Assembly (NCBI GenBank): GCA_965644295.1
Contig: CBFFRP010000111.1
Span: 126,074 to 190,073 of the forward strand
DNA: 64,000 nucleotides
From: Paraphysomonas bandaiensis
Taxonomy: Eukaryota; Protista; Chrysophyceae
Direction: 5' to 3'
Shown here: piece by piece, positions 22,666 through 54,579 of the stretch
How the letters are laid out: the number at the start of each line of letters is the position of its first letter
Position numbering within the stretch: position 1 is the stretch's first letter
Translations under genes and position numbers: made by a program
Notes under the pieces: generated by a model
The model's input: only the letters and a program-made list of their open reading frames with translations
The model's database searches: none
What the model was told of the DNA's origin: nothing

Positions 22666-23617
22666 CAACACCCGGTTTGATAACCAGGGTGTTGGCTCGT
22701 AAACAATAGTACTACTATAACACCTACACTGAACCAACAAGCACAGTAATGACGGTATTATTATTAAAACACTTTTCCAAGTTTAGACCTAAACTCAGTT
22801 AGTGACTCCCGCGAAGAGTCACCGCGCAATGGTATACCGCTGGCACCCAAGATCACTAGCACCAAGCTTTGGTCTAACTTAAAACAAGTGATAAACACCA
22901 TAGAAGCATATATGCACACACACACACTCCTAACATGATGGTGCAACACACGTGGTGTCATCACACCACCACAGGTTGCGTAACTCTTCAATCAAAAACT
23001 GAAAAATACACAGCAACCTGATAGGGAGTGACTCACCAGCATATGCCGAGAGTACACCGTATACTACGTATCTATACCCTACCAGAGACTGAAAACCCCC
23101 TAATCCAGGAAAATTATTTAGCCCGCACCGCAGGTGCGGGATCCCGCACCCTTGTTTTTACACAAAGGCCGCACAGCAAGTGCGCCCATCGAGTGATCCA
23201 ATCAGCAGAGTGCATCATAGCATAGTGCATCATATCACATGCATCGAGTATATGTATATAGTAATATGACGAGGCAGCCATATGCAGCAGATACACGTTA
23301 ATGAGTGCTTGAATGATAGGTGATAACATGTTGCTACCATCTTATTTCATGAAACTGTGAGATGAGATATGCAGTTACTGGACGAGGTTTATAAGGCTGT
23401 ATGGAGAGGAACTGTGAAGGGCTGTATATTATGGTATGAAGTGATATGATATGGATATCAATGATTGAATTCCAGGTGGGAGCATCATGCTCCCATCATC
23501 CTATTTAAAGTGTCAGGTATGCAGAGAGATGAGAAGTGGTACATTTGAAGGAATAGAAGGCTGTATATCATGCATGCACTATGTTGTGTGATGGTATATG
23601 AGATGCTGAATGTTGTC

Positions 23618-24003
23618 ATGGTTTATTATGCTGTTGTAGGCGCAATGACGTTTATACTTACCGGTGCAAGAGGGATGCCTAAGCGACACAAGCGCCCGGC
23701 TGCCCCTGTACCATCTTGCAGTGAATATGTGTCATGTTGTGTAAGGGTATGCAGTATGGCTGTATGTGATAAGAATTCTGAACGGTGTGGAATAATAAAA
23801 TGCTGAAGGCTGTGATGGTTTATTATGCTGTTGTAGGCGCAATGACGTTTATACTTACCGGTGCAAGAGGGATGCCTAAGCGACACAAGCGCCCGGCTGC
23901 CCCTGTTCCATCTTGCAGTGAATATGTGTCATGTTGTGTAAGGGTATGCAGTATGGCTGTATGTGATAAGAATTCTGAACGGTGTGGAATAATAAAATGC
24001 TGA
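23618..24003. repeat. 197-bp tandem repeat x2 inside the Crypton-like element
   Basis: atggtttattatgctgttgtaggcgcaatgacg... at 23618 and 23815. Also present twice in copy 2 (about 53680-54065). Confidence 0.95.
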
Positions 24004-24537
24004 ACGCTGTGATGGTTGATTATACTGTTGTATGCTCTGTAAATAATGATACGATGTATTCCAATTACTAATGAATCATTAATTATAAGGGTACAGTATA
24101 AAAAGTTGATGGAGTGGTTATAAATGAATACATATAGGCATTCTACAGATTACTAACATCAGACTGTGTCGAATAATAAAATGCTGCACGCTGTAATGGT
24201 TGATTATACTGTTGTATGCTCTGTAAATAATGATACGATGTATTCCAATTACTAATGAATCATTAATTATAAGGGTACATTATAAAAAGTTGATGGAGTG
24301 GTTATAAATGAATACATATAGGCATTCTACAGATTACTAACATCAGACTGTGTCGAATAATAAAATGCTGAACGCTGTAATGGTTGATTATACTGTTGTA
24401 TGCTCTGTAAATAATGATACGATGTATTCCAATTACTAATGAATCATTAATTATAAGGGTACATTATAAAAAGTTGATGGAGTGGTTATAAATGAATACA
24501 TATATTGGCATTCTACAGATTACTAACATCAGACTGA
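24003..24537. repeat. 184-bp tandem repeat x~2.9 inside the Crypton-like element
   Basis: gctgt(g/a)atggttgattatactgttgtatgctctg at 24006, 24190 and 24374. About two units in copy 2. Confidence 0.95.
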
Positions 24538-24613
24538 AGTTTCCTTTTCTTTGTCCTTGGAATAATGTTACCATCACTGTCCCTTCGTGCACTCATTGCA
24601 TCATATATACTGT

Positions 24614-26322
24614 TTATGTATTTCTTAGAGGCTTTTTTTTGGGGTGAAACTTGTCGTAATTTTCCTGACCAAATAAATCAACAATAACACGCAATTCAAC
24701 CTTTTCAGCTATGCATTTTAAATTACTCTTCCATTCTCTGTACGAAGTAGACTGACTTGCCATACAGGGTTTCGGCTCATCAAGAAAACGTTTCTCGTCA
24801 TCGTACAATAGGCCGAGTCCTTTAGTCAATACTCGATTTAGTTTTTTCTGTTTGTTGACGTTGTCTACCATAGGGTATCTCTTTCCTACAATTTCATGTA
24901 ATTCATAATCAAAATAGTCAATAATAACTGTTGATAAGCATAATTTTTCGAGAGTTTTATATTGAATGAAGGATATATGGGGCATGCGCTGCATGTTAAC
25001 TCTCATGTATTGAAAAACATTTGTCGTAGTAGTGGATGGACCTTTGGAAGGTCCTTCAGTAATCGGAGGCAAGACTGTAGGCGATGTAGGTATCCGTGAT
25101 ACAGTCTCTGAAGTTGGTATAGTGGTATCCGTTGGAATATTTTTCAAGCCTTCTAGAATATCAGCCACAGCAGTGTCTAATTTCTTGTGCAGATCAGCTA
25201 TTGCAATAGTTTGGGTGTCACACTTTCTATGAAGCTGTTGTATTTGGTCTCGAAGAATGCGATTCTCCTGGTAAATTTCGTCTACATTTCTTGTGTCTAC
25301 AAAATTAAGGCGAAGCCATTCCTCCTCAATCGCAGCACTCCATTGCATTATGTCATTCCAAGTGAAATGGTGGCGCATCATGTTGTGCTTGAATTTACAA
25401 ACCACTGCATGTTGTGCCGTGTATTTAGAAACAAATGATGGTAACCTCATAAGGAATGTAGCAAACACAGAGAGTTTAAATTGAAATAGACAGCCATCAA
25501 CCCCAAATTCTGGGTAAGTGAGTGGATAACATGTTTCGATTAACGCCATCACTTGTTCTCGGTTTCCATTGTTGATAAATACACACTCGGGTGGATATAT
25601 CTTATTCCTGGGATTAGAGTAGCCACTTAAAATTTTTCCACCCACAGCAATAGTGACATCTAGTCCCATGATATACTCAAAAATGCTGCACTCTCCGGAG
25701 AAGTCCCATCCTCCACGCATAATCGCATGGAAGATGCCGCCTGACTGACTACTGGCTATGTCAGTTGCAGCCCCGACTCTAAGACCCTTGCCTGTTGTTT
25801 CCCCACTGGACTTGTTTTCTCTGATATACGCACTCCTTGTGCGATACACCGCTTGATAATATGCTTTGATACTGCCGCTCTCACATCTTTGTACCACAGC
25901 TCATTGGAGCTGCTTAATAACTCATTTCTTTTAAATCGCTTCGTCAGCGCAGTCTTCGTGTCTGACAAATACTGCCAAGCAGTACCTAGGGTCAAAGGCT
26001 TCTTCGTTGTTCCATGGACGGCGTGATCGATCAAAAAGCCACCGAAACATTGAAATAGTTCTACATTTATATCACTGTCTATGAGTTCCTTATACCTCTT
26101 CTTCCCGTCGAACCGCATCTCCAAGTACTTCGCAAACTGAGCTAACGCAGAGGAGTTACGATTTTTGGTTTCCCCATCACCGACTTTTCTAATGCCCCCT
26201 GTGGTAGTTGATTCCGTGGTAGTTGATTCCGTGGTAGTTGATTCCGTGGTAGTTGATTCCGTGGTAGTTGATTCCGTGGTAGTTGATTCCGTGGTAGTTG
26301 ATTCCGTGGTAGTTGATTCCAT
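24614..26322 (-). pseudogene. Tyrosine recombinase (CryptonS-like), split by a deletion/frameshift near 25797
   Basis: An N-terminal part (MESTTT repeats...GTAWQYLSDTK...EKTSPVGK) is fused out of frame to TTGKGLRVGAA...RGGW...FEY. The box I region is missing. A further probable frameshift lies in an A-run near 24635. Confidence 0.7.
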
Positions 26323-27091
26323 GCTACTATGATATGTTCTCGCTGTTATTATGTTCTGTATGTATGATACCATGCTGTGATGAGAGAGCTCCTCCTTCAA
26401 CACCCACCTCCCTGGATCTATTACTCACCAGCAACACCATACATACCACTGGTCACTCATCATCACCACTTATATAGTTCCACACCATTATGGTGCGGGC
26501 TTGAGTACGGTACCTTCCACATTTTACAGAAAATACATAAATACGGTACGTATAGTACGTATAGTACGCACACCACATTTGCAATCGAACCCCAATAAAA
26601 GCCTTGCATAAACACTCGTGCACCTCAAGTGTACAATAGCGACTTCTCTCTTATGATGGTCACATGTACTTGCCCCCCTATAGGGTAGTACGGGTAATAC
26701 CTGTATGTATGTATATGGAAGTATATACTGCAACTGCTATACAGGAATACGGGCCCACATAACTTTGATATAAATTTGCAGCAGGTTTCACATCGACCGA
26801 AGTCACCAGCAGCAGATCATAGTCGTACATCATCATCAGCAGATAAAATTGGACATCATACCCGAGCGTTGGCTCAATATGTAGGTACACTGTGGTACAT
26901 TACCAATGTCCAAATGGTGTTGCATAATATGTATCCTGAACACAATGAAGGTCCTAAAGCAATATATAGGGTCCTGATATAGGGTCCTAAACCAACATAG
27001 GGTCCTAAAAGTCAATGTAACCATGCATGTGACTCAATAGCGTGATACTATAGCCACGTAGATAGGGCATGGGAAATGCCACGTGGTCACA

Positions 27092-27507
27092 CTGCCTCCT
27101 CCCCCGTTTTGGTTGTCTACAGAATAGCATGCCTCCGGTATTCACAAATGCCAACGGGACTAGGTGTTACGTAGCCGTCAAAACGAAAATCCCCGGAGAA
27201 TTATAAGTTATATAATAATAATTTGATATGGAATAGAATTGAGAGAGCAATAAGAATAATATGTGTCTAGCGTGGAACTTAATAAGACGCACGGACCTGC
27301 TTTTATTTTGCTTCTCTTACTTTCCCCCATAATATTGTTATATCACAGAGATTGAGTACTACTTATTAAGTAATATTACTGTATGGGTATACACGTCTAC
27401 CATACACACATAAATATGCACTCCTGTACGTACTCCACACGGAAAGTGCGAACTAGATAAGATCCAGTCGAGTGTTTATACATTGAGCTCTGCCGCACAT
27501 AGCTACA
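27092..27507 (-). mobile_element. Truncated Gypsy-derived fragment: 128-bp LTR-like segment, leader/gag start identical to the full Gypsy, then a PPT
   Basis: 27297-27382 is the exact reverse complement of 43342-43427. 27380-27507 reads TGTAGCTAT...ATACA on -. The purine tract gggggaggaggcag is followed by TGTGAC at 27091. Confidence 0.6.
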
Positions 27508-27512
27508 CATAT

Positions 27513-27700
27513 ATACATACCTACATACTGTACATACATACCTACATACAGTACCTACCTACATACATACATACATACATACATACATACATACATACAT
27601 ACATACATACATACATACATACATACATACGTACATACATACATACATACATACATACATGCAATACATACATACACATACATACACATACATACATACA
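27513..27700 (+). repeat. (TACA)n microsatellite, imperfect
   Basis: Directly visible. Confidence 0.95.
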
Positions 27701-27841
27701 TGCACACACACAAGCTACGAAGGTTCCTACCTACAGTATCTACTTCGTATACATATCTCGTACTCTGTACAAATATTCTGGACGTGCCCAGGCCCCGCAG
27801 ATGGATGTACCACACATAGCCCTTATATTCTCGAATGCTAA

Positions 27842-28315
27842 GGCCGTTCCTTACGGTTGGGTAAAAAAAAAATGAAATTTTTTTTCTTCCGCATTCTCAA
27901 CACGGTTGGTCAAAAAAAAAGATAACATACACATGATGAAAGCACCCATTTCTATAGGAGAAACTGTCAAAAACCAGTGTTTTGTAAAGAAAAGGGGGTT
28001 TCATGCCATATATATTGAAAAGTTAATGTAGATATATTGGATGCATTATGCTGGTTCCAGGACACCGTTTGAATCACAACAAGCGCTCAGCCTACTCGAC
28101 ATAGACTTGGTAAAACTCGTGATAACAATAATATGACTCGAGGTTCCTAATATAGGCCGCAATATTATTTCTTACCATACCATGTATGTTGGAAAGAAAT
28201 GAAATCATTTCTTACCATGATCCAAAATAATTTTTTTTTTGACCACCGTAAGGAACGGGAAGAGCAAGAAAAAAAAAATTCATTTTTTATTTTTTACCCA
28301 CCGTAAGGAACGGCC
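27842..28315. mobile_element. Tourist-like MITE (PIF/Harbinger superfamily)
   Basis: TIRs ggccgttccttacggt(t)gggtaaaaaa / ttttttacccaccgtaaggaacggcc, TSD TAA on both sides, 474 bp, non-coding. Confidence 0.9.
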
Positions 28316-28366
28316 TAAGAAATCGATTTATTTCAAAAACAAGTGAAGTCGAAATGTTTATATCTC

Positions 28367-28426
28367 CTACATACATACATACATACATACATACATACAT
28401 ACATACATACATACATACATACATAC
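28367..28426 (+). repeat. (TACA)n microsatellite
   Basis: Directly visible, about 130 bp upstream of the SLC12 ATG. Confidence 0.95.
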
Positions 28427-28558
28427 TTCTTCTATTCATTGTATTGTATAGTAAGAAGAGTCTTAGTAGTTAACTCTGATCACTATCATCATCATATTAT
28501 TAATATGATACATCACACTTAACTCCATCATATTCTACCCTCATTCATTACATTAATT

Positions 28559-31500
28559 ATGAATACTAGTGTAAATTATGAAGATGATTATGATAATGAT
28601 ACTATATCTGATATATCATTTGAAGATGTTGATAATTTCTATAATCGTGATGATGTTATCACAGCCAAAAGGACAGCATCATTTGCATTTATTCCAACAG
28701 CAAGTAATATCACTGATCAAGTTGATATAGAACAACAAAAGACACCACAACGTGTGATTACTGATGCATTTACACCACCACGTCTTGGAACAATACATGG
28801 AGTACTTATACCATGTTTATTATCTAATATGATGGGTGCTATGCTATTCATGCGTCTTCCTTGGATTACAAGTCAAGTTGGAGTATACTTAGCAGTTGTA
28901 ACATTCGTTCTCTCTTCTGGTTCTACATTATTGACGTTTATGTCTCTTGTTGCAATTGCTACTAATGGGAAGTTGAAAAAATCCGGTGGTCTTTATGTTC
29001 TTATTCGAAAACATCTAGGCTTAGAGTTGGGTGGCTCCATTGGTTTGCTTCACTTATTTCAGAAAATGCTGGTGGTGTCAATGTACTGCCTCGCTGCTTC
29101 TGAATCAGCCCTCAACTCCACTAACAGCATTGGCATGATGCCCTATGATGTGCCCATATTCGCCATTGTGTTGTGCGTTCTAATGACATTTTTGCTTTTG
29201 CAACCACGCTTATTAAAGAACATCAACGATGCTTGCCTGGTCATACTTGTAGGTGCTATTCTAACTGTGCTCTGCTTTGTTGTGGGTGGGATAGCTTTTA
29301 GTGCGAATAGTTGGAATGGGAAACTTACTGATGATGACCGCAAGTACGTAGACTGTCTCACTCCAGCCTATAAGAAGGATGAGGATACCAGTGTCACTCC
29401 CTCTTTTTTTACCCTCTTAGCCCTGTATTATGCCTCTGCGAGTGGTTTCATGGGGGCGTGCACAAGATCAGGTGGTGTATGCTATACTGTGTAAATATAC
29501 ATGTATCACTTACTTCTTTCTTTTGCAGGTAATCTCTTGGCCAATCCAGGGCGCTCGATTCCTCTGGGTACTTTGTCCGCCACTCTTGTTGTCTCCTGCG
29601 TCGTCCTGTTTATTATATTTCTCTGTGGATTCGCGATCAACCGCGAGACTCTACAGGAAGAGAAACTAGTTCTCGCGATGCTCTCCTGGCCGTCTGTGGA
29701 AGTAGGCCAGGTAGGCATCACGCTATGCTGCATTGGCGCGGCGATGGTTAACTTCAAAGGTATTCCGCGATTAATATTCCTGATCGATAACGACGGTGCG
29801 GTACCGTTTTTCCGGCCGATATTGCATCACCATATGTCACATTCACATGATGTGCAAACAGTTCGCTCTGGTGCTTCTTCTGGTCATATGCAGGCTGCAA
29901 CCTGTGTCGTGTTTTTAACATTCTTAGGAGTCTCGTTGCCTTGTTTGACGGGAAACATGGACTATCTCGCACAGTTCGTGGCCTTGCCAAGTCTTCTTGT
30001 GCACGTTTCAGTGAACTTCTCGTGCTTTCTTTTGGCTATTGTTAAAGCACCAGGCTTTAGACCGCATTGGCAGTACTTCAGGTATTAATTCGTTCGTTAT
30101 GATTGTAGGGTGGATTTGGTGTTAGCTGCGTGTGAAATTCGCCTATTGTTTTTGCTTATATTAAAGGCTCATTTTGCATTCATGAATACAGTTGGCATAC
30201 AGCCCTGCTGGGTACGTTATGGTGTTTTGGTATGATGCTTCTGATCAACTGGTGGTTGAGCATTCTGTTCACCGTTCTACTGCTCGTGCTGTTTGTAATG
30301 GTATCTCGAAGCACTGCTGGCAATGACTGGGGTGATGCACTCTCCGGACTCATGTACCAGCAGGTAGGCATCACTACTGACAGCACTTCCTGTTGCATCG
30401 TATGCGTACTTGAAATTAGTTGGGGAAGAGCTCACTCAACAAACGAGCTGTCTAATGTCGTAGCATCATACAAAACCTGCAGTGTCGTTGAGGTTGCATT
30501 GTAGTCATGCGGTGTATTTATCAGGCGCGAAATCTTCTATTGTATATGAGTGGCCCTGCCTCAAGTTCTCGACGATCTAAAAACTGGAGACCACAACTAA
30601 TGGTAATATGTTTATTGTGATGTATATGTTGGCAAAAGAATTATGGTCCCGACATTGCGACATGTGTGGTTAACATATGAATTAAGGTTGTTACTCATAT
30701 ACGAGAAAAGCGGACGGGTGATTCCCCAACTCGGTTTCTTCATGAGTCCTTGATCCGGCTGGCAGGACAAATGAAGAAAGGAGAGGGGCTGACTATGGTT
30801 GCTGCCCTTCTTGAGGTATTGCTTTGCAGAAAATGTTATCATAATTCTCCGCGATACTGTTTAAAACTCTATTGATACTGTCCATTCTTATAACGCCATC
30901 TGTATACCAGGGAGAACCAGCCTACGTGCATCCTCAGGTCTGCGATGAAATTCAGGATGACTTGGAGGCATTCATGCGCAATGAGGGCATTTATGGATTT
31001 GCAAGGTGGGTACATATATATAGAACTCTGCGTTTCCACATGTTCGAACTTGTACAGTTAATAGGTTGAATTGATTCCCTGTATGAATATGTTTTGTATC
31101 GTGGTGCTTGCCGTTATACTCGTTTGAGGGTGCTTTATTGCGCAGGTGTTGTGTTACTCGGACCCTTGTGGATGGATTCGACACTGTCGTTCAGATGGCA
31201 GGCATGTACTACCCAAGCGGTTTTGTATTATGAAAATGATACCTCTTGTTAGTTATGTAGTGTGTGTACTTACGATGATGCCTAATACACCCAGCGCTCA
31301 TACGTATATGACAATTGCGTTGTAAGTAGGTGTGGGAACAATGAAACCGAACACACTCATTTGCCAATGGCCAGATGGACTGGAAGATATGTGTTACGAC
31401 GACGCACGTGAGCATGTTGAGAGGGTACGGACATCATTTGATTGGTCTAATGGCTAGCTACTTTTTAATACTTTTATCATAAAGTTATATGTAGAAGTCA

Positions 31501-33184
31501 TATCATGCTGATTTGGATTATGTTACATGCACTCATGTGCTTTGTTTTTTTCTTATAGTTTCGCGTTGTTGCGACATCCAAGAAGGCCCTGATTGTAGTT
31601 AAGGGAGCCAACGCTCTTCCCTCTAATCAGGCTCGCTATCGTGGGTACATAGATGTGTGGTGGGTGGTAAACGTTCATGATGGGGGACTTCTCATTTTAC
31701 TTCCCCATCTCCTGTGGCTCCACAAGGTAATTTCATTGATTAAACGTTATGTGAATAGTGTTCAGTGTGAAATAGTATGATATTGTTCACACGAGTGGCG
31801 ACCAGATGTACATACCATCGCTTGTATTGTACGAGATATTTATGTATTGTGTACTAGGTGTGGCATCATTGCCAGCTTCGGTTGTTCGTTGTAATGACGA
31901 GCCCCGGCGACAATCCCGTCAAGCTAAAGCGTCGGGCTGAAGAGCACCTAGATCATGTAAGTATTGTCACCAATGATTTCTATAGATATTTCACTATTGT
32001 ACATCTTACTCTTTCGTGTTATGTGGTTTTGTGTGAACTCATACGTGTGAGGCAGGAGAGAGTGGATGCAACAGTGGAAGTTGTTGACTTGTCCGCGTCG
32101 TCACATGGCGTCTATGACTTCACTCTCGATCACAAGTGAGCAACACAAGTTTTATATATTATTTTGATGGGAGGGTGATTGTTCTGTGATGCTGGTCCAT
32201 CTGATTATTTTGAAGTCTTGTTAATTGCTTCAGTTTTTAATTGGTGCAATATGACTTACCTTCTGTTTTAGTGCGCGTAATCAGCTGCTGATGACACTCA
32301 ACAATCCGCATACTCTTTCCGTAGCGCTACGACAAGGTATCTACACATCACACTTTTTCGCAGTTTGCCGATCATGATGTTTGCAGACTCCGACTACAGA
32401 CTTAGTGTTGCCAGAAAGTCTCATCTGGCAGAAATATTTAGAAGTGTATCTCCATCAGGGGAAGTACCTAAAACTAATTCGGATAGCCTAATGCGTAGTC
32501 CAGACCACTTCACACCACATACAAGTCCTGAAAGGCCAGATACCAATGACCGTGACCACGGTGACATAAACGGTTCTCATGACGAGGTACTTGTTACTGT
32601 TGATTTCTGTGTACTATGAACATTGTTGTTCTGTCGATTCTAATATGTACCCTTCAGCTCCGTTGTGATGATGGTGGATCAACTGATGGAATAGTACTAG
32701 ACACAATAGAAATGTCTCAGGTAGATTTATCTCCCCCCTGTATCGAGCATCGACCCGATGAAGCCTTCATCGCCAATTGCATGCAGGTACATATCCCCGA
32801 AGTTTATTTTTCTCTGTAGTTATGTATTGCATGCGCATATCTGCGTATATTTATAAAAACTTGATTACCTGACGGTTGAATGGTGCTGTACAGATAGCGG
32901 TACAGTTTAATGCCCTTCTCAGACAGCGGAGTAAGGACTCTAAACTTGTTGTGCTCAATTTCCCTCCGGTATGATACATATATGCATGCTGAGAGATGTT
33001 TCTAATAAACTGAATAGTTACACAAAATGGATGATGCAGACTTTATTAACTACACTGCGACACTGACCAACAACCTTCAGCCGGTATGAACTGCGACTGG
33101 ATTATTTCATACTGGTGACTAAATCATTTGCAGGTGCTATTAGTGAAAGGAACTGGACAGGAAATTATCACATCCTATAGTTAG
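28559..33184 (+). CDS. SLC12 cation-chloride cotransporter (KCC/CCC-like), multi-exon
   Basis: RLGTIHGVLIPCLLSNMMGAMLFMRLPWI, AIATNG...GGLYVLIRKHLGLELGGSIG, RSG|NLLANPGRSIPLGTL, APGFRPHWQYF, WGDALSGLMYQ, KNWRPQL, GTMKPNT, GYIDVWWVV...DGGLLILLPHLL, ending VLLVKGTGQEIITSYS*. Confidence 0.93.
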
Positions 33185-36399: not shown

Positions 36400-37030
36400 T
36401 AGAGGATAGAATGTAATTATATGATAGAAGGAGGAGGGGGGGGGGGGTATGTTAATACTATGAATTATGTATGTATATATATAGAGAGAGTGAGATGCAG
36501 TCCAAGATCATATACATGTATATGCAAAGATTACGTGTATATATATACTGTATGTTCCATACATATATGCAAGAGGGGACATACACTTTACTTTGTATAC
36601 TCGACTCTGGATGCATACCAGGCATACTGCTGTCAAAAAATAGGCATCGTAGATCGTTGGTTACTCATCCATCATTTTTTTAAATGATAAAATGTGGCAT
36701 TTTGAATGGTTTTTTTGTGTAGATGGCTCATTTTCTATATAATTGATTGCACAAAACTTTGGTTTTTATATAAAAATACTAATATTAGGATAAAATGCTG
36801 ATATTATGTAAAAAAATGCTTATTAAGGCGAGAATATCCTGATAAATTGATAGGAACTTATATATCGGTTGAGACTAATCTGGTAACCATGCAAGAGCAT
36901 GCATACCATACCACTAGCTGTTAATGCAATTAATATCATATATTATGCAATAGAGTATGTAAATACGACATGGGAGTATTTCATTGTTGATACTACGAAT
37001 ATATTACCACCTCTATTGTTCATTAAGGAT

Positions 37031-42500: not shown

Positions 42501-43027
42501 TCGCCAGCAATGTCAGCGAGGAGTAGAGCAAAAAACACCGCCATGAGATCCACCTACGCATTTTCATCAGATACACAACACGTAGCCACAAACAAATCAA
42601 GACGTTTATTACATTTTATATACAACACGACGGACATTATTAATGGGCATAAAGAGAACAACGTAGAAAATATTGTAATACAACTGAAAACTCACACGTA
42701 TGAGTTATTTAGAACAGAAACCGGAAAAGGAAGAGACGTACCGTTGACCACATAGCCTTCATAGGGCCACGACACACCCCATTGCATTCGTACTCTAAAA
42801 CTTTGCCATATTCTGTAGCCCCCACGTAAGTAAGCCCGCTGGGTACCACTCCACTAGAATCAAACATACATACTGCATCCTTAGAAACCTCATTCTTATG
42901 TCTCTCAGAACGCAAGTATAAATACCGACCGATAATTATATGCCACATATGGGTTGTTATACAGACAGAAGTAGCTATAATAATACAGCACAATGGACTC
43001 GCAATACCGTAGGTCATCAATACCGAG

Positions 43028-43344
43028 TGTAGGACTATCCACTTACATATAGAATATATAAGTGTACATGTCCTGTATTATATGATTAGTAGTACAGTAC
43101 TGTATTGTATACGTGTACCATGTAGTTAGGAATACAAACTGTAGGGAATGTGATTGTTGGGATTAGCAATAGCCGTTGATATTGTAGACAGTATTATTAG
43201 CCGTTGATATTGTAGACAGTATTATTAGCCGCTGATATTGTAGACAGTATTATTCATGATTCATTATACGATAATAATCATTATTTTGTACTTCTGTACT
43301 TGGGTATTGCTTTGCACACATACACATATGTATGCAAGCCCACA
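43028..43344 (+). repeat. 5' LTR (contains a 28-bp repeat x3)
   Basis: tgtaggactatcc...gcaagcccaca, with agccg(t/c)tgatattgtagacagtattatt three times. Confidence 0.97.
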
Positions 43345-43393
43345 GTAATATTACTTAATAAGTAGTACTCAATCTCTGTGATATAACAATATT

Positions 43394-46300
43394 ATGGGGG
43401 AAAGTAAGAGAAGCAAAATAAAAGCAGCTCCTCAAATAGAGGAATTGTTAGCTGCTTCGGGTTCTTCGTCTAAAAAGACGAAAAGAGAGAGAGAATCCTC
43501 TCGAAAACGAGCAAGAGATGCAACAACATCATCTCAAATGCAATCTTCTCCTCAAACTGAGACATCAGTAGAGGCGGAAGGAGAATTGAGTGGAGTATCA
43601 TTTCGTGAGCTCTCTTCTTCTCAACCAAAGAGAAAGAAGCAAAGGAGTGGAGATCCGCACCCCAACAGGAGTGAGCGCATTGACTTGAATGAAGTCATTG
43701 CAACGGAATCCACTCCACATGAAGTAATCAATACCGACTCTATTCCCTACTTAGGTAGTGTGCAAGATGAGGATATCATCGAATTTTGTGAAAATCTCTC
43801 GAAAAGAGATCCTAAAGGGACAAAATTCATAAGGTCAGAAATCATGGCACCAACAGTGCGTGATATGCTTCAGTTTCAGCGACAGCAGGATTTTGGAGAT
43901 GAGTCTGACGAGGACTGGCTAGATCCTAACATTGTAACTACTGAGGAATTGATTCAGTGGTTAAAGCAAGCCTTTCTAGAGGAAGAGGAGCGATACTCTG
44001 ATACATTGGAGCCTCTTCCTAGGTTCATAGATAATATCATTGGACCAAAAGTTAAGGTGGATATTCATGTTCCTAAAGTATTCTTAAAAGAATATGGACG
44101 TCTGAATGAGCTTTATAAGCTCATTCCGGAGGCAAGTCTCACAGAGGTAGCCTCGGATACCATAGTCAAAACCCTCAAGAAAAACATCAAACTTGTGGGC
44201 GGACATTCCTTCAGAAAGGATGCCAAAGAGAAATTTATAGCGGATATAGGCCAAGGTCAATCTGCACCAAAAGATTTCGGAGCATTCTGTAGAAAGGTGC
44301 GAGAGCTTAACAATGACTATAGTCAAGCTGTGAGAAAAGTAAAGAGGATGGAAACTAAATTGGATTCCAAAGAAACGTCTAAGTCTAACAAGTCTAAGAC
44401 TACAAAAACTTCATCCTCCAGCTCATCCTCAAGTACTAAAGCAACAACTGATACTAAGGAAGCATGTTGGATATGCGGTAATCTTCATAAAGGTGACTGC
44501 ACCCGCAAAACCTGTGCATGGGCTAACCATGAAAAGAAGCCATGGAAAGATTCCACACAGGGCAAAAAATATGCGGTTATGGGTTGGAGTACCTGCCCTT
44601 ATGTGGAGAATCCTGATGGTCCTCCAAGATCGAAAACAAGTAAGTTATCATGCCCTAAGTGTTTATATATAAATGCTATTGACATGAATAATGATATGCT
44701 CGATGTCTTTGTATATCCTAAAGCTGATGTCAATGTACAACAGGTAAAGGAAAATCTAAGAGCTAAAGCCTTATTGGACACGGGGGCTACTGGGAATAAT
44801 TTCATTAACCAAGAACTTGCTGATATGTTAGTTGCTAGGTATAGAATTCCATTGCACGAGTGTAACATTAAAATTTGTAGTGCGCTTGATAATGCTTGTT
44901 GTAGTAGCAAGCAATATATGATAATAACTATAAGATTAACTGATGAGTATAACAATACTCTTGATATTGAGTTGCAATGTTTGATAATAGATAGCACCTT
45001 TGATATCATAATTGGTAGAGAAACTATCAAGAAATATAGATTAGTTGATCATTTTCCATCTCACTTTATGGAAAGAGAGTTAGCAGGGAAAATGCTAGCT
45101 ACGGCCGCGGGCCATGCTGAGAAGACTCAGCTTCTCTCGGAACATATTAGTGAGAGAGCCACATGTTATAATAACATGGAAACATTAAGGCGCCAAGCTA
45201 AGGAACACCTTAGTTATAATAATAATTTACTTACAAGTAATAGCTTGGTTAGTACTATGTATTCACCTCCAATATCATCCATGCGTATAAGTGCATATGA
45301 AAAGGAAGATATAGGCGAGATTAGAGATAACTATCTGGAGTCAATCCCAGAAGAAATAGTTACAAATACTCAGGAAAAAGTAGAAGGTACTACGTTACCA
45401 ACTAAAATCTCTGGTCCCGAATCTTTACAAAGGAGGGTGAGAGAAATCCATGAAATCTATAAGGATAGATTTAGAACCACAGTGTCGGATATGCCAATGG
45501 ATGTTCCACCTTTTGAATTAGAGGTAGATAGGGATGCTTGGGAACAACCAAAACATTGTGGTCCGCCACGAAAGATGGATCGAGTACGACAGTATGCTTG
45601 TAAAAAGCAAATCGATACATTTGTGGAGCATGGAATAATACAACCAAGTACGGCTCCTTATTATAGCCAGGTATTATTAGTTCCCAAACCAAATGATAAA
45701 TGGCGATTCTGTGTAGACTATAAAGGTCTAAACAAGCACACACAGAGGGAACGTTGGCCAATACCTAACATCAAAGAAATGTTAGAACGTATTGGGTCTA
45801 AGAAACCCAAATACTTCATAATTCTGGATTTAGTATCTGGTTATTACCAGGCTAAAATTTCAGAGTACTCGAGAAAGTGGACGGCATTTATAACCTTCTG
45901 GGGAGTATTCGAATGGCTCCGACTACCCATGGGTTTGAGTGGTGCTCCATCATACTTTCAACGAGTATTAACAACAATTGTGCTTGCCGGGTTGATTATG
46001 TTCATATGTGAATTATATCTAGATGACCTGATTATATATGCTTCTACAGAAGATGAACTAATTGAAAATTACGTTAAAGTTCTAGAACGCTTCAGGAAAT
46101 ACAATGTTTACATTAATCCTGAGAAAGTGAAAATAGGAGAGTCCGAAGTACAATATGTAGGACATACTCTAAATGAGGAAGGGTTACACTTTACTAGAGA
46201 ACGTCTGGATAGTGTATTAAATTTCCCAAAGCCTGAAACTATGAAGGGTCTAAAATCTTTCCTCGGATTGGCAAATTATTTTCGGGATCACGTGCACAAC

Positions 46301-48226
46301 CACTCCTTAGTGGTGAGACCGTTAAATAAAATGCTTCTCAACTATCATAGACGTAAACGTCTACAATGGACAGAGGATGCCAATGAAGCATTTGAAAAGA
46401 TCAAATTGATGATCCATGAATGTCCAACATTATTTTTCATTGATGACGAGTCACCAATATATTTATTGACCGATGCATCTGATTATGGAATAGGAGCATA
46501 CCTCTACCAAGTAGTAGATGGTGTAGAACGTCCAATAGGATTTCTCAGTAAAACATTCGATGAAAGAATGATGAATTGGGATACACCTCAGAAAGAAGGA
46601 TATGCTATATACTATGCCTTAGATAAATGGGACTACCTATTAAGGTATAGATACTTTACGATCAAAACAGATCATAAAAATATTACTCAGTTGAGAACTG
46701 ATTACGCTAAGGATAAGAAAGTTCAGCGATGGTTGAAATGTTTCCAAGCATATGATTATGATCTATGTGATATTAAAGGATCTGATAATGTTGTTGCTGA
46801 TGCATTTAGTAGACTATGTGCATTAGAATCTAAAATGGAAACAAAATGTGCTTCCCTAATTCCCGATATTAAAGTTCCAAACAAGGAATGGGAAATTATC
46901 AAAAGATTTCATAACAATGTTACAGGTCATCATGGTATTGATCGTACAATACAAAAATTACGAGACAATGGTCATAAATGGTCAAAGCAAGGGGCACATG
47001 TGACAAAATTTATTAAAACTTGTCCTTGTTGTCAAAAGATGAGTAGAATTAAACCAATAATTAATGCTCATCCCTTTACTGTCTCAACATATGGCCCGAT
47101 GCAAAGAATAGCAGTGGATTTTATTCAGAGTCTGCATCCAGATGAGGATGGATACACTAATATATTAGTGATTATCGATTCTTTTTCTAGGTGGGTAGAA
47201 TTAATCCCTACTAAGAATCTCACTGCCATGGCGGCGGCAAAGGGATTGCTTCAACACCTGGGTAGATATGGAGCACCTATTGAGATTCATTCGGATCTTG
47301 GACCAGCATTTGTGGATGATTTAACAAAATCATTGATAGAAATGGTTGGAAGTAATCAATCATTTTCGATGGCGTATTCTAAAGAAGAAAATGCTATAGT
47401 GGAACGTGCTAATAAAGAAATTTTAAGGCACTTAAGAAATATTATATTTGATAAAAATGTACTAAATAATTGGTCAATGTATCTACCTTTAGTACAAAGA
47501 ATTATGAATTCTTCTAAACATAGAAGCACCGGCGTTACTCCCGCTAGTATTCTATTTGGGAATGCAGTAGATTTAGATAAGAGTTTATTCATTGAACACA
47601 ATGAGAACTTGGACGGGAACGAACAAAAGCTATCACATTGGATAGATAGAATACAAAAGGTTCAGTCCACTATTATGGATGTTGCAAGACGAAATCTTCG
47701 CAAACATGATGAAATCCACATGGCAACTGCACCAAATATACAAACAAAAGAATTTCCAATAAATTCTTATGTGTTAGTTGAGCATAGACAAAATGCTTTA
47801 CGTCCTGGACCGGCAAGTAAGTTATTACCATATCTTAAAGGTCCAATGCGAGTAGTCAATGTTATTGGAGACAAATATACTCTTCAAGATATTGTTACTA
47901 AACGTAATAAAGACTATCATATAAAGAAATTAAGGGAATTTAATTACGATCCCTCTACTATTGACCCCTTACAAGTGGCATGTAAAGATGGTGGAAACTT
48001 TTATGCTATTGACCATATTTCAAAAATAAAAGGTCGAGCTAAAGGTCCGAAAAGTCAAATAAAATTTCTAGTACATTGGATAGGGTATGAAAAACCTACA
48101 TGGGAACCATGGGCTAACGTTAGAAAAACGTATGCTCTACAAAATTTCCTAACTCAACATCCTGATGAAAATGTAAGAAATTTACTACCTCGAAATGTGG
48201 TTTATTCTTCTGATGAAGAAGATTAA
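43394..48226 (+). CDS. Gag-Pol polyprotein (Zn knuckle, protease, RT, RNase H, integrase, chromodomain)
   Basis: CWICGNLHKGDC; LLDTGA; WRFCVDYKGLN, LPMGL, YLDD; TDASDYGIGA; HHG...CPCC with D-D-E; C-terminal FLVHWIGYEKPTWEP. Gypsy domain order. Confidence 0.97.
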   Translation: MGESKRSKIKAAPQIEELLAASGSSSKKTKRERESSRKRARDATTSSQMQSSPQTETSVEAEGELSGVSFRELSSSQPKRKKQRSGDPHPNRSERIDLNEVIATESTPHEVINTDSIPYLGSVQDEDIIEFCENLSKRDPKGTKFIRSEIMAPTVRDMLQFQRQQDFGDESDEDWLDPNIVTTEELIQWLKQAFLEEEERYSDTLEPLPRFIDNIIGPKVKVDIHVPKVFLKEYGRLNELYKLIPEASLTEVASDTIVKTLKKNIKLVGGHSFRKDAKEKFIADIGQGQSAPKDFGAFCRKVRELNNDYSQAVRKVKRMETKLDSKETSKSNKSKTTKTSSSSSSSSTKATTDTKEACWICGNLHKGDCTRKTCAWANHEKKPWKDSTQGKKYAVMGWSTCPYVENPDGPPRSKTSKLSCPKCLYINAIDMNNDMLDVFVYPKADVNVQQVKENLRAKALLDTGATGNNFINQELADMLVARYRIPLHECNIKICSALDNACCSSKQYMIITIRLTDEYNNTLDIELQCLIIDSTFDIIIGRETIKKYRLVDHFPSHFMERELAGKMLATAAGHAEKTQLLSEHISERATCYNNMETLRRQAKEHLSYNNNLLTSNSLVSTMYSPPISSMRISAYEKEDIGEIRDNYLESIPEEIVTNTQEKVEGTTLPTKISGPESLQRRVREIHEIYKDRFRTTVSDMPMDVPPFELEVDRDAWEQPKHCGPPRKMDRVRQYACKKQIDTFVEHGIIQPSTAPYYSQVLLVPKPNDKWRFCVDYKGLNKHTQRERWPIPNIKEMLERIGSKKPKYFIILDLVSGYYQAKISEYSRKWTAFITFWGVFEWLRLPMGLSGAPSYFQRVLTTIVLAGLIMFICELYLDDLIIYASTEDELIENYVKVLERFRKYNVYINPEKVKIGESEVQYVGHTLNEEGLHFTRERLDSVLNFPKPETMKGLKSFLGLANYFRDHVHNHSLVVRPLNKMLLNYHRRKRLQWTEDANEAFEKIKLMIHECPTLFFIDDESPIYLLTDASDYGIGAYLYQVVDGVERPIGFLSKTFDERMMNWDTPQKEGYAIYYALDKWDYLLRYRYFTIKTDHKNITQLRTDYAKDKKVQRWLKCFQAYDYDLCDIKGSDNVVADAFSRLCALESKMETKCASLIPDIKVPNKEWEIIKRFHNNVTGHHGIDRTIQKLRDNGHKWSKQGAHVTKFIKTCPCCQKMSRIKPIINAHPFTVSTYGPMQRIAVDFIQSLHPDEDGYTNILVIIDSFSRWVELIPTKNLTAMAAAKGLLQHLGRYGAPIEIHSDLGPAFVDDLTKSLIEMVGSNQSFSMAYSKEENAIVERANKEILRHLRNIIFDKNVLNNWSMYLPLVQRIMNSSKHRSTGVTPASILFGNAVDLDKSLFIEHNENLDGNEQKLSHWIDRIQKVQSTIMDVARRNLRKHDEIHMATAPNIQTKEFPINSYVLVEHRQNALRPGPASKLLPYLKGPMRVVNVIGDKYTLQDIVTKRNKDYHIKKLREFNYDPSTIDPLQVACKDGGNFYAIDHISKIKGRAKGPKSQIKFLVHWIGYEKPTWEPWANVRKTYALQNFLTQHPDENVRNLLPRNVVYSSDEED

Positions 48227-48291
48227 TAACAAAGTTTACAGAATTGAGTGTCAATATAACACATTAACACATCAATTATAAGGGGAGGTAG

Positions 48292-48608
48292 TGTAGGACT
48301 ATCCACTTACATATAGAATATATAAGTGTACATGTCCTGTATTATATGATTAGTAGTACAGTACTGTATTGTATACGTGTACCATGTAGTTAGGAATACA
48401 AACTGTAGGGAATGTGATTGTTGGGATTAGCAATAGCCGTTGATATTGTAGACAGTATTATTAGCCGTTGATATTGTAGACAGTATTATTAGCCGCTGAT
48501 ATTGTAGACAGTATTATTCATGATTCATTATACGATAATAATCATTATTTTGTACTTCTGTACTTGGGTATTGCTTTGCACACATACACATATGTATGCA
48601 AGCCCACA
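48292..48608 (+). repeat. 3' LTR
   Basis: Matches the 5' LTR and is preceded by the PPT. Confidence 0.97.
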
Positions 48609-51600
48609 CGAGCAATGATGGAGAATGTTCGACATAATCACACCAGCTCCAAGTACTTTTCGGTATTCGTACTTGTGCGGGCGGTTTGGCCATAATATAC
48701 TTGGTATGAGTGTAATAGCCGCGTCCCATTTCTGTGTATTAGTGAATTGTATAATCAATGCAGCAAGCAGAGGCTGAAGAAACGCAATCATAGTATACGT
48801 CAATATAAACACCGGTATGAAATTCCTAAGTACAGCCGATGAGCACTGGTAAGAGTACGTGTACGGAGGTGTAAACGAAGTGGAAAGACTCACAGAGTAG
48901 TAGTTGGTACACTCCAGGTCACCATTAATAGCGTTGCACAGTTTGTAAGTACCACCAGTGCCTATATCTGCTGTACCAGTAAACAACTCCACGAAGCAGC
49001 TCTGATCTGTCATCGCACTTGCTAATATTGGAGCAACGATACTATTGAACATCATCAGAATCAAATGTAGTCGAATGCGCACCTTAGATCGCAATAAATG
49101 GGGAAACAAACTAATTCCCTTCGTGAGTACCACTGAATTGAAAACGATATCAAAAATAGAGAGGGATGCTTGCATGAACCCCGCAGCCACTTGCGATACA
49201 TCTTCCCAGATCAATATGTACACATAGGACCCTTTCACTCCCAAGACTACGATACAATTAATGAACACCACAGCAATTATATATACGTATGAACGAAGAT
49301 TTGAGCTCGTTTTTTCATTTGATGTTGCAATCGCTACAGCATCTTCAATACCTTGCGATACGTCGTTGTTAGTATCACAGTACTTTGTATCTGAGTGTAT
49401 TACAAAGCTCAGGAACCCTACCATTGCGAGGAACACCAGACAGAGCAATATATATGCACTGGTGGGTCCAACAAGAAAAGCTGCTGAGTATAGGTATCGA
49501 TACTGATAAGTGTGTGTGCCCGCACCGATAGCAGTTTTAAGAGTGACGTAAGCGATCATGAAAGTAATAATTATCATCACAGACATATTGATCACAAGAA
49601 CGCGCATTTCACGTAGACTTCGTAAGAAATTTCTCAGTTCTGGATTAATAGATGAGTTCACATTGCTGGCAACATTATGCCATTTCCTGAGAGTTGAAAA
49701 GTGCTGGATAATGACATCAAATATTTGATTTCCACGGAAGGCAAAAATTATCCCCAAAGTACCACAGACACTAGCACATAGACATGTGAAAAGGAGGAGT
49801 GAATAGTCGACACGGTCGGACCCACATGAGTATGTCGAAGATTCAGGGTCACTGTGAGGAAGGTGATTCGTATTCCGGCAATCAAACATATTTCCAGCAA
49901 GAAGGTTGATATGAGAAATTCCCTTCACACTTTTTGGTACGTGTCCTGACAGACGATTTACACTTAACGATAATTTCACGGGCTGCTGAGATTGCTCTGC
50001 TGAAATGTATCCCTCAGTATTCAGTTCATCGCATGTACCCGACAATCGGTTATGACTTAGGTCCAGCTTGTGCAAAGGAGATTTACGAAGCGAAAGAGGT
50101 ATACTACCTTCCAGAGTGTTATAGGCGAGGCTGAGGTCGGTTAACGATATGATGCCAGGAGGGTCAGGTATGGTACCTTCTAATAAATTCCCTGTTAAAT
50201 GAAGGGTCTTTAAATTAGGGAGGTCCCATATACACGCGGGAATCGTACTACCCTTGGAGGATGGTATGTAAGCCGGCTTTAAAGCAAAAGGATTCCAAAT
50301 AGATCTACGACACTCTTTACCTGAGTGCAATCCTTCCAAAACGATGGTTTCCAATGTACTGGATTCGCATACCGACGAAGGAATGGGTCCACGAAAGCAT
50401 CCACCAGTTGCAGCGACATATCGAATATTCACCAAGCTAAAAATAGCATCAGGGAAGGCACCAGAAAATCGATTTTGTGATATATCTATCGCCTGCAGGA
50501 GGGCAAATATGGAATCACCAGTGCTCGTAAAAACGTCATTCAAATCGCCTGTCAGTCTATTATTCTTAAATAATATGGTCTGTAAGGAGGAGCAGTTGCG
50601 GAGAGAATAGGGTAGCGTCCCAGTCAAATCATTGTTATACGCCGATAGCTGCTGAAGGTACCGCGCATCCCCTATGCTAGATGGCAATGGTCCCGTGATG
50701 TCGTTGCCGTGAATGTATATATATTGCTTACTCCCCTGGAACAGCTCAGCTGGTAGAGTTCCAGTAATTTCGTTGTCACCAAGGTTGAGAAGAAACAAGT
50801 ACGGTAAATTGCATAATTCTAAAGGTATAGTGGACGTAAAGAAATTACTATCCAGATGAAGTTGAATAATATTTGGAACATTAGAGTAATCAGTTGGCAC
50901 AGGTCCAGACAGTAAGTTATTCGAAACATCTAGTTCGAAGGGACGTTTTACAGGAAAAGAGCAGTTAAATACCAAAGGTCCTGTCAAATAGTTATCACTT
51001 GCTGCTAAGTGGGTCATCTTTATACCCATATATATAAATCTAATGGGTCCAGATAAAAAATTATTTGAGATATCCAGCCACTTCAGTAAAGGCATTCCAA
51101 GAATAGTATCCAGAAACCCGGTCAAATAGTTACTACTGAAATCCGCAACACGTAGTTTGGTGTAGGCACTAATTGTGTTGGGTATGCTGCTTGAGAGGAA
51201 ATTCGAAGATATGTTGAGTGTACTTAGCTTTGATAAATCACCAAGCGTTGAGGGGATACCACCATGAATACTGTTACCTCCCACCTCAATACTGTAAACC
51301 TGACACCCCCCACTGCACCAATAAGTTGGCAAATGTCCGGACAGCATATTTTCTGATACATCAATAGTCTGCAATTGCTGAGGTAAAGGAGATAGAACAG
51401 GCCCTGTAAAATAGTTGGAACGCAGTGCTACACTGACAATATTGGGCATGAAGGATAGCCCAGTGAGAATGGTTCCTGTTAACATGTTGTACCGCATATC
51501 TATAGCAGTGAGGGAACTAATACCTACAAGTGACGACGGCATGGGACCACTGAGACAATTCGTTTGGAGAAAAAGAGAAACTAACGATGTTGGCAGGGGG

Positions 51601-52175
51601 GGAATATGTCCGGATAACAATGCCGATGATATATCCATAACATACAACTGAGTCAGTTTAATAATTGAAGATGGAATGGTGCCTGTGATTGCATTATTAT
51701 CAATATACAATGTAGAGAGTGTATCAATATTGCCAATATCATCTGGAAGTGATCCCATCAGACTACAATTAGATAAACCTAATGATATAACAGTGCAATT
51801 GATTGATTGACAGGTCTCTGAGTCATATCCACAGTCCACATGAGCCCATTGATCAATACATGGATCACTTCCATCAGTAAAATTCCAATTTGTATTACAT
51901 GATTTACTCCATGTATTACCTGATGTAGAAATGAATAAAGAATGAAGGGCTGTGTATTGTTGAGTAGGTAAACAACTGTATAATGGGACGATATATATAT
52001 ATATATATGAGATGAACCATAAAGCACGTAAAGACATTATTGAGAAACTATGAGTGAGGGGTTACATGTTGTTATATACTGTGTAATCTGAGATATCGAT
52101 CTAGTCACAGATATGTGTTGGAAGCAAGTATGTTTATATGTTGCTACTCACAGTGTACAGTGCGTGTACAGCATC

Positions 52176-52293
52176 GTATGTATGTATGTATGTATGTATG
52201 TATGTATGTATGTATGTATGTATGTATGTATGTATGTATGTATGTATGTATGTATGTATGTATGTATGTATGTATGTATGTATGTATGTATGT
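52176..52293 (-). repeat. (TACA)n microsatellite on the minus strand
   Basis: (TATG)n on +, about 140 bp upstream of the LRR gene ATG. Confidence 0.95.
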
Positions 52294-52330
52294 ACTGTAC
52301 GTTTCTGTCAACTTTTATCCACGCACTCGT

Positions 52331-54579
52331 TTTTCTGTAAAATGTGGAAGGTACCGTACTCAAGCCCGCACCATAATGGTGTGGAACTATATAAGTGGTG
52401 ATGATGAGTGACCAGTGGTATGTATGGTGTTGCTGGTGAGTAATAGATCCAGGGAGGTGGGTGTTGAAGGAGGAGCTCTCTCATCACAGCATGGTATCAT
52501 ACATACAGAACATAATAACAGCGAGAACATATCATAGTAGCATGGAATCAACTACCACGGAATCAACTACCACGGAATCAACTACCACGGAATCAACTAC
52601 CACAGGGGGCATTAGAAAAGTCGGTGATGGGGAAACCAAAAATCGTAACTCCTCTGCGTTAGCTCAGTTTGCGAAGTACTTGGAGATGCGGTTCGACGGG
52701 AAGAAGAGGTATAAGGAACTCATAGACAGTGATATAAATGTAGAACTATTTCAATGTTTCGGTGGCTTTTTGATCGATCACGCCGTCCATGGAACAACGA
52801 AGAAGCCTTTGACCCTAGGTACTGCTTGGCAGTATTTGTCAGACACGAAGACTGCGCTGACGAAGCGATTTAAAAGAAATGAGTTATTAAGCAGCTCCAA
52901 TGAGCTGTGGTACAAAGATGTGAGAGCGGCAGTATCAAAGCATATTATCAAGCGGTGTATCGCACAAGGAGTGCGTATATCAGAGAAAACAAGTCCAGTG
53001 GGGAAAGAACTAATGAAGCGCATAGGTGAATACATTATACATCGGGCATCTGATTTCTCCGGTAAGTGGACATACTTCACATATCTATGATTTACTGTAT
53101 ACCCTATGGTAGACAACGTCAACAAACAGAAAAAACTAAATCGAGTATTGACTAAAGGACTCGGCCTATTGTACGATGACGAGAAACGTTTTCTTGATGA
53201 GCCGAAACCCTGTATGGCAAGTCAGTCTACTTCGTACAGAGAATGGAAGAGTAATTTAAAATGCATAGCTGAAAAGGTTGAATTGCGTGTTATAATCAAC
53301 CATTACAGCGTTCAGCATTTTATTATTCGACACAGTCTGATGTTAGTAATCTGTAGAATGCCTATATGTATTCATTTATAACCACTCCATCAACTTTTTA
53401 TAATGTACCCTTATAATTAATGATTCATTAGTAATTGGAATACATCGTATCATTATTTACAGAGCATACAACAGTATAATCAACCATTACAGCGTGCAGC
53501 ATTTTATTATTCGACACAGTCTGATGTTAGTAATCTGTAGAATGCCTATATGTATTCATTTATAACCACTCCATCAACTTTTTATACTGTACCCTTATAA
53601 TTAATGATTCATTAGTAATTGGAATACATCGTATCATTATTTACAGAGCATACAACAGTATAATCAACCATCACAGCGTTCAGCATTTTATTATTCCACA
53701 CCGTTCAGAATTCTTATCACATACAGCCATACTGCATACCCTTACACAACATGACACATATTCACTGCAAGATGGAACAGGGGCAGCCGGGCGCTTGTGT
53801 CGCTTAGGCATCCCTCTTGCACCGGTAAGTATAAACGTCATTGCGCCTACAACAGCATAATAAACCATCACAGCCTTCAGCATTTTATTATTCCACACCG
53901 TTCAGAATTCTTATCACATACAGCCATACTGCATACCCTTACACAACATGACACATATTCACTGCAAGATGGTACAGGGGCAGCCGGGCGCTTGTGTCGC
54001 TTAGGCATCCCTCTTGCACCGGTAAGTATAAACGTCATTGCGCCTACAACAGCATAATAAACCATGACAACATTCAGCATCTCATATACCATCACACAAC
54101 ATAGTGCATGCATGATATACAGCCTTCTATTCCTTCAAATGTACCACTTCTCATCTCTCTACATACCTGACACTTTAAATAGGATGATGGGAGCATGATG
54201 CTCCCACCTGGAATTCAATCATTGATATCCATATCAAATCACTTCATACCATAATATACAGCCCTTCACAGTTCCTCTCCATACAGCCTTATAAACCTCG
54301 TCCAGTAACTGCATATCTCATCTCACAGTTTCATGAAATAAGATGGTAGCAACATGTTATCACCTATCATTCAAGCACTCATTAACGTGTATCTGCTGCA
54401 TATGGCTGCCTCGTCATATTACTATATACATATACTCGATGCATGTGATATGATGCACTATGCTATGATGCACTCTGCTGATTGGATCACTCGATGGGCG
54501 CACTTGCTGTGCGGCCTTTGTGTAAAAACAAGGGTGCGGGATCCCGCACCTGCGGTGCGGGCTAAATAATTTTTCTGGA
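52331..54579 (+). mobile_element. Crypton-like element, copy 2 (larger internal deletions, catalytic region absent)
   Basis: Near-identical inverted copy of 23104-26533. It has 4 rather than 8 ESTTT units and keeps KELMKRIGEYII..., which copy 1 lacks. Deletion joins near 53099 and 53292. Confidence 0.8.

Follow-up and report, generated by a model that had tools for sequence, protein, structure and literature searches.

A very young Crypton-type transposon family with a 5-bp TTTTC core in Paraphysomonas bandaiensis

The window analysed here is a 64,000-nucleotide stretch of the Paraphysomonas bandaiensis genome (assembly GCA_965644295.1, contig CBFFRP010000111.1, positions 126,074 to 190,073 of the forward strand), read 5' to 3'. 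It carries two repeats in inverted orientation that are broken copies of a very young Crypton-type transposon family. At a probability of roughly 85%, these repeats were taken to be non-autonomous deletion copies of a DNA transposon that inserts when a recombinase pairs the element's joint with a similar genomic site. Under this mechanism, the recombinase would pair the joint (AATAAT-TTTTC-TGTAAAAT) with a genomic site resembling it (T-TTTTC-NNNN-AAA), strands would be exchanged inside the 5-bp core TTTTC, and the inserted element would be left between two cores, one side carrying the target's core or a hybrid and the other the element's. Comparison of empty and filled sites showed that insertion adds one unit and one core. 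We infer that cutting and joining are carried out by the Crypton protein through a circular intermediate, and the same holds for the exact positions of cleavage.

Inverted arms of 1289, 473, 273 and 195 nt, 99-100% complementary, were recovered within the window, where an earlier reading of the letters alone (the sequence-only reading) had placed two inverted copies. The end sequences it quoted were read correctly: in element orientation, both copies start TTTTCTG-TAAAATGTGG and finish AATAATTTT(C/T)CTGGA. Its limits located the copies and ran slightly past them, the outer TGGA (23104-23107 and 54576-54579) being flank and the element ending at the core. The features of the two copies were mapped as follows.

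23108..26533, minus strand: copy 1, 3426 bp including both cores, with a unique 470-bp internal deletion (reference positions 711-1180).
26529..26533, minus strand: left (5') core of copy 1, TTTTC, of the element type; the element's TG-TAAAATGTGG comes next.
23108..23112, minus strand: right (3') core of copy 1, TTTCC, target type, with the element's AATAAT before it and the flank TGGATTA after it.
24614..26322, minus strand: remnant of the copy 1 recombinase gene (ATG at 26322-26320), with 8 units of a 15-bp ESTTT repeat.
23122..23150, minus strand: 3'-end motif cluster of copy 1, GGTGCGGG-AT-CCCGCACC-TGC-GGTGCGGG.
26492-26499: partner motif CCCGCACC just inside the 5' end of copy 1.
52331..54575, plus strand: copy 2, 2245 bp including both cores, with reference positions 801-2104 and 2300-2590 missing.
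52331..52335, plus strand: left core of copy 2, TTTTC.
54571-54575, plus strand: right core of copy 2, TTTTC.
52542..53061, plus strand: recombinase exon 1 of copy 2, with 4 ESTTT repeats; a GT donor follows at 53062, and from near 53100, within the intron, the sequence is deleted.
54533..54561, plus strand: 3'-end motif cluster of copy 2 (GGTGCGGG, CCCGCACC, GGTGCGGG).
52365-52372, plus strand: 5' partner motif CCCGCACC of copy 2.

Through its deletion, copy 1 has lost the 3' part of exon 1 together with the intron and the first catalytic Arg box, and is therefore non-autonomous; its deletion joint lies near 25794-25802, and exon 2 survives from LRVGAATD up to the stop at 24614. Copy 2 lacks the catalytic domain and shares its deletion class with one other locus, L030. 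Neither window copy is able to make a recombinase. The four GGTGCGGG/CCCGCACC motifs just inside the ends are the sole occurrences of this 8-mer in a full-length copy and are candidate accessory binding sites. The 15-bp ESTTT-encoding repeat at the start of the recombinase (26201-26320 in copy 1; 52545-52603 in copy 2) varies in unit number: copy 1 has 8 units and copy 2 has 4, against 5 or 6 in copies of full length.

Since the two copies bracket a segment in inverted orientation, they could also be viewed as the arms of a single 31-kb composite element (23104-54579) moving as a unit. This was judged extremely improbable: each copy has a complete pair of ends, about 35 other copies are solitary, the outer flanks come from unrelated repeat families, and an amino-acid permease fragment, a leucine-rich-repeat gene, a Ty3-type long-terminal-repeat (LTR) retrotransposon and other repeats occupy the 26 kb that separate the two copies.

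The assembly searched for further copies comprised 62.5 Mb in 669 contigs, in which the window belongs to contig C111. Family pieces were matched 82 times at 91-100% identity, and those beyond the first 740 bases of the element were 99-100% identical. Exact-end patterns gave 41 left ends and 40 right ends; the reversed control pattern gave 0. The inserted unit is ~3.87 kb (full-length copies, 3860-3876 bp), and 14-15 full-length copies were found, five of them with a complete reading frame. Among 14 aligned full-length copies there were only 5 substitution columns, three of which separate two subfamilies (7 vs 7 copies); the remaining differences were the count of 15-bp repeats and one A-run. 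The catalytic exon was 100% identical at 15 loci. Deleted forms also recurred at loci with differing flanks: 11 loci carry a 2.54-kb class, 3 a 1.07-kb class and 2 the 2.245-kb class of window copy 2. That the same deletion classes stand at several loci with different flanks indicates that defective copies were mobilised in trans and spread to new loci. Older, stop-ridden relatives of the recombinase (33-76% identical) were seen elsewhere in the genome (C396:835-1239, C281:368686-369155, and contigs C106, C63 and C237), and the lineage has therefore been resident for some time.

A full-length copy contains a single long gene, which in copy L002 consists of exon 1 (532-1081), a 58-nt GT..AG intron and exon 2 (1140-2689). 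The encoded protein of about 730 residues has a Cre/Flp-like core-binding domain and catalytic domain, then a coiled coil and a C-terminal domain. Database protein P0001 (742 residues, 99% identical, carrying the spliced DFS-EVKK) was used as a stand-in for the whole protein. A full HMMER scan returned 379 relatives at E up to 0.001, the best of them 25-35% identical over about 330 residues. In a 57-sequence alignment, conserved columns were found at R216 (56/57), K244 (57/57), R324 (56/57), W348 (52/57, H in 5) and Y359 (57/57). The conserved catalytic Tyr is Y359 and not the Tyr of the LSGY motif singled out earlier. An AlphaFold2 model built with this alignment had a mean predicted local distance difference test (pLDDT) score of 82. 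The top Foldseek matches of the model were all Cre (probability 1.00), and VIA-align gave Z-scores of 15.5 for Flp, 15.0 for Ndc10 and 15.0 for Cre, with residues 48-352 placed on Cre 35-319; XerH, the Tn1549 integrase (Z 11.4) and lambda integrase came next. These matches confirmed, for the predicted structure, a two-domain tyrosine-recombinase fold with core-binding and catalytic domains. The sequence-only reading had proposed a Crypton-type element whose sole enzyme is a tyrosine recombinase, and both the fold and the catalytic residues bore this out; of the R-K-H-R-H/W-Y set it expected structure prediction to locate, all positions were found (R216, K244, R324, W348 and Y359) except the His, where the protein has Lys.

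A word-indexed protein search matched the recombinase only to itself, and a search of PDB chains returned weak chance matches with exon 2 alone (E above 0.6) and coiled-coil matches only with the family profile. A profile search added one protein, from Skeletonema menzelii, aligned over residues 114-718 (E = 1e-29); in this protein, as in some of the relatives, the alignment reaches the C-terminal region. In the ESM Atlas, the clusters closest to the recombinase were from Oomycota, followed by NDC10_II and DUF3504 clusters. Pfam gave no GCR1_C match in the Crypton protein. Near the 3' end of the gene, a polymorphic A-run was observed (L002-L016; at about 24630-24645 in copy 1). With 8 A (9/14 full-length copies) the frame stops at ...KKKPLRNT, and with 9 A (5/14) it gains 34 residues, including a basic PRTKKRKL patch that resembles a nuclear localisation signal. 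Each subfamily contains both run lengths, so slippage has occurred repeatedly.

Tyrosine recombinases are also used by DIRS and Ngaro retrotransposons, and a GC-rich palindrome about 25 nt from the 3' terminus, together with the lack of a classical target-site duplication, recalls Helitron-like rolling-circle elements. Assignment to either of these classes rather than to Cryptons was considered very unlikely. The 3.87-kb element held no open reading frame (ORF) or Pfam match for reverse transcriptase, RNase H, DDE transposase or Rep/helicase; it has no split or inverted long repeats, and the palindrome motif is present, inverted, at the 5' end too.

The ends of the Crypton copies were then read from unique flanks. 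The left core, taken as the five bases before TG-TAAAATG, was TTTTC in 30 of 35 unique left flanks (the others being TATTC twice, CTTTC twice and TTGTC once), and the right core, the five bases after AATAAT, was TTTTC in 35 of 37 unique right flanks (the others being TTTCC in window copy 1 and TTTTT once). The flank of the copy with the TTGTC core, L018, is unique in the assembly. CTG stood immediately before TAAAATG in 35 of the 36 left ends read, and the right flank was variable from +1 on; the TG after the left core is therefore the element's own, and 5 bp are common to both ends. The 7-bp core TTTYCTG proposed earlier thus shrinks to TTTTC. The prediction of short direct repeats at the ends without terminal inverted repeats held: the ends carry a 5-bp terminal direct repeat, TTTTC, and neither terminal inverted repeats nor long terminal repeats; the sole inverted motifs, of 8 bp, lie just inside them.

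Insertion sites were compared with the 194 background TTTTC sites of the window. T was enriched at -1 (23/35 sites, p = 1e-7), and A at +5, +6 and +7 (26, 24 and 26 of 37 sites; p = 3e-10, 2e-6 and 1e-7). The element's own joint would read T-TTTTC-TGTA-AAA, and the enrichment matches it at these positions, so that the targets mimic the joint. TG at +1 and +2 was found in 4/37 sites, about 2 being expected by chance. Only TTTTC, the T at -1 and the AAA at +5 to +7 are common to the insertion sites, and the element is therefore weakly sequence-specific in insertion. The sequence-only reading had described a sequence-specific, integrase-like element with the target TTTTCTGGA; what was found is a loose context around a 5-bp core.

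Three independent empty sites were read, one for copy 1 and one each in two other repeats, termed B and D. The flanks concerned were mapped as follows.

22660..23112, strand not assigned: left part of the host repeat of copy 1 (1.2 kb; at least 40 copies, 95-99% identical), which continues at 26529-27299.
52293..52335, plus strand: outer end (outer 38 nt) of the B inverted repeat, forming the left flank of copy 2 and adjoining (GTAT)n at 52176-52298.
54571..55020, plus strand: repeat D, forming the right flank of copy 2, whose paralogues give the near-palindromic empty site gaagacaTTTTTCtggaaaaatgtcttc.

For copy 1, the empty site in 10 paralogous repeats was gtaTTTCCtggatta (gtaTTTCCtgg), in place of the TATTTTCTGGATTA that had been reconstructed from its flanks. 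Once occupied, the site has gta-TTTTC-TG... at its left border and ...AATAAT-TTTCC-tggatta at its right border. Of the two cores, the left is of the element type and the right of the target type, which argues against a target-site duplication and for a crossover between similar cores of element and target. Transposon B, unrelated to the Crypton, is 3.38 kb long; its 191-bp terminal inverted repeats are perfect, and its ORF encodes a DDE_3 (Tc1/IS630-like) transposase. In contig C433, a Crypton copy sits in the inverted repeat of one B, and the other repeat of a neighbouring B gives the empty site cactcgTTTTTCcacaaaaac. The B and D empty sites contain a single TTTTC each. The empty sites in B and in the copy 1 host repeat sustained the earlier idea of insertion via a short core. 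In the paralogous repeats, the empty site of copy 1 is TTTCC-TGGA, and that belonging to the copy 2 right flank is TTTTC-TGGA; the CTGGA that had been taken as common to both was hence close to correct as a reconstruction of the local targets (TTTYC-TGGA) and is a local coincidence, not a property of the family.

A fixed-length direct repeat at the ends and a single TTTTC in the empty sites of B and D are also what would be seen if TTTTC were a 5-bp target-site duplication, made by the staggered cut of a DDE-type transposase acting in trans, with the recombinase-like gene as a passenger. Several observations made this most improbable. Copy 1 carries TTTTC as its left core although its empty site has TTTCC; in 7 of about 36 copies the two cores are not the same, which a target-site duplication would not lead one to expect in a family this young (5 substitution columns); the element has no terminal inverted repeats; and the sole long ORF is a recombinase with a conserved R-K-R-W-Y catalytic set. 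The sites also mimic the element joint beyond the core, which fits the pairing of sites and not a staggered cut.

The variant cores bear in addition on where strands might be exchanged. The five variant left cores depart from TTTTC only at core positions 1-3 and the two variant right cores only at positions 4-5, a pattern expected in 6/128 arrangements under random segregation of a 5-bp heteroduplex (p about 0.05). It fits one crossover point, TTT/TC, and is suggestive only. The element's TGTA was carried over to the right end in no copy. Exchange at this single fixed position, with no heteroduplex overlap, was considered unlikely. It could conceivably arise, by analogy with the insertion of integron cassettes, through exchange of one strand followed by replication; if so, transposition would be replicative, which could explain the burst to about 40 near-identical copies.

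Copy 2 did not have the flanks of one site, as had been assumed. It is chimeric, with the B inverted repeat (empty site cactcgTTTTTCcacaaaaac) on its left, then the element, and repeat D (empty site gaagacaTTTTTCtggaaaaatgtcttc) on its right. The remainder of transposon B was searched for within the window and was not found. Recombination between two copies is the most likely cause of the chimera, which could alternatively be an assembly error.

Several points weigh against the proposed insertion of a Crypton by pairing of joint and site. At least four copies have flanks that do not belong together (window copy 2, two in C58 and one in C259), and these could reflect recombination between copies or errors of assembly. 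Neither a head-to-tail joint (expected AATAAT-TTTTC-TGTAAAATG) nor a circle joint was present in the assembly; in metagenome contigs the joint and a control end sequence were both absent, so that this blank carries no weight. Precise excision and reinsertion by a tyrosine recombinase would not alone account for the increase to about 40 copies. At the protein level, the Lys replaces the His of the classical R-H-R-Y tetrad, a position at which the relatives have H, T or K; neither the Crypton exons nor P0001 matched any Pfam family, and PF00589 was reached by only 1 of the 57 relatives, at 9.8e-5.

Further observations concern the repeats that host the copies. The copy 1 host repeat frequently occurs as same-strand pairs about 7.5 kb apart, an arrangement compatible with retrotransposon long terminal repeats or with a tandem unit. 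Transposon B has at least 12 copies, several of them beside (TATG)n runs (for example L061 in C32, 347-3722). Within the B inverted repeat lies a TTTTTC that the Crypton has hit several times, namely in two B repeats of C433 and in those attached to the chimeric copies of C58, C259 and the window. Repeat D (54571-54750; paralogues L056-L060) opens with a near-perfect 28-bp palindrome, GAAGACATTTTTCTGGAAAAATGTCTTC, and abounds in GACAGAAA/GTCTTT words; present in dozens of copies, it is probably a small transposon of the non-autonomous kind. Two tail-to-tail pairs of Crypton copies were seen, at C58:213332-218812 (L011, L032) and C346:91318-96531 (L024, L025), with gaps of only 58 bp and about 140 bp between the 3' ends. 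Both outer flanks of the C58 pair are inverted repeats of one B copy without its interior, and this pair looks like a rearrangement driven by the Crypton. Between the two window copies, the Ty3-type LTR retrotransposon (43026-48589) has direct repeats of at least 300 bp at a spacing of 5264 bp and an intact ORF of 1610 residues (reverse transcriptase, RNase H and integrase). Immediately beyond its 5' repeat lies a 90-nt segment of which an inverted copy stands at 27293-27382.

The element was compared with known systems. Cre-loxP and Flp-FRT share its two-domain fold (Z 15.0 for Cre over residues 48-352 and 15.5 for Flp) and its R-K-R-W-Y set, whose spacings in the Crypton recombinase are presumably close to those of Cre. 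In the Crypton joint and targets, too, a short spacer is flanked by a T-run and an A-run in inverted symmetry. In contrast to these systems, the Crypton targets are loose, consisting of a 5-bp core plus context in which single core mismatches are tolerated, and the crossover would lie at the left edge of the symmetric region and not in a central spacer of 6-8 bp. The integrases of conjugative transposons (Tn916/Tn1549 and IntDOT) carry an element, by way of a circle, into many T/A-rich sites that are only loosely alike, and they accept heterology in the overlap region. They too are tyrosine recombinases, that of Tn1549 being among the structural matches (Z 11.4); unlike the Crypton, they are bacterial and need accessory factors and conjugation, and their variable coupling sequences were not seen at the Crypton ends.

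CryptonS elements, described from oomycetes and the diatom Phaeodactylum, lack GCR1_C, share a conserved region at the C-terminus and end in direct repeats of 5-6 bp that in most cases read TATGG (Kojima and Jurka 2011, PMC3212892). The window family resembles them in its single tyrosine-recombinase gene without a GCR1_C match, its possibly comparable extra C-terminal region, its stramenopile host, its short terminal direct repeats (here 5 bp) without terminal inverted repeats, and its kin, the nearest protein clusters being from Oomycota and a full-length relative occurring in the diatom Skeletonema menzelii. It differs in its core, TTTTC as against TATGG in most described CryptonS, and in the Lys at the tetrad His. 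Compared by description only, the family fits the published account of CryptonS except for the core. It is probably a new family within a known class, the Cryptons, and not a new kind of element, and as a discovery it is modest.

To our knowledge, Cryptons have never been studied biochemically. The circle-and-attachment-site mechanism is itself a proposal by analogy (Kojima and Jurka 2011, PMC3212892). The family described here has full-length copies with complete frames as well as mobilised deletion forms; its ends are placed to single-base precision, its target logo is measured and its empty sites are verified. It therefore offers a practical system, in a marine protist, for testing that mechanism. 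The chimeric copies suggest that Crypton elements rearrange the host genome as well.

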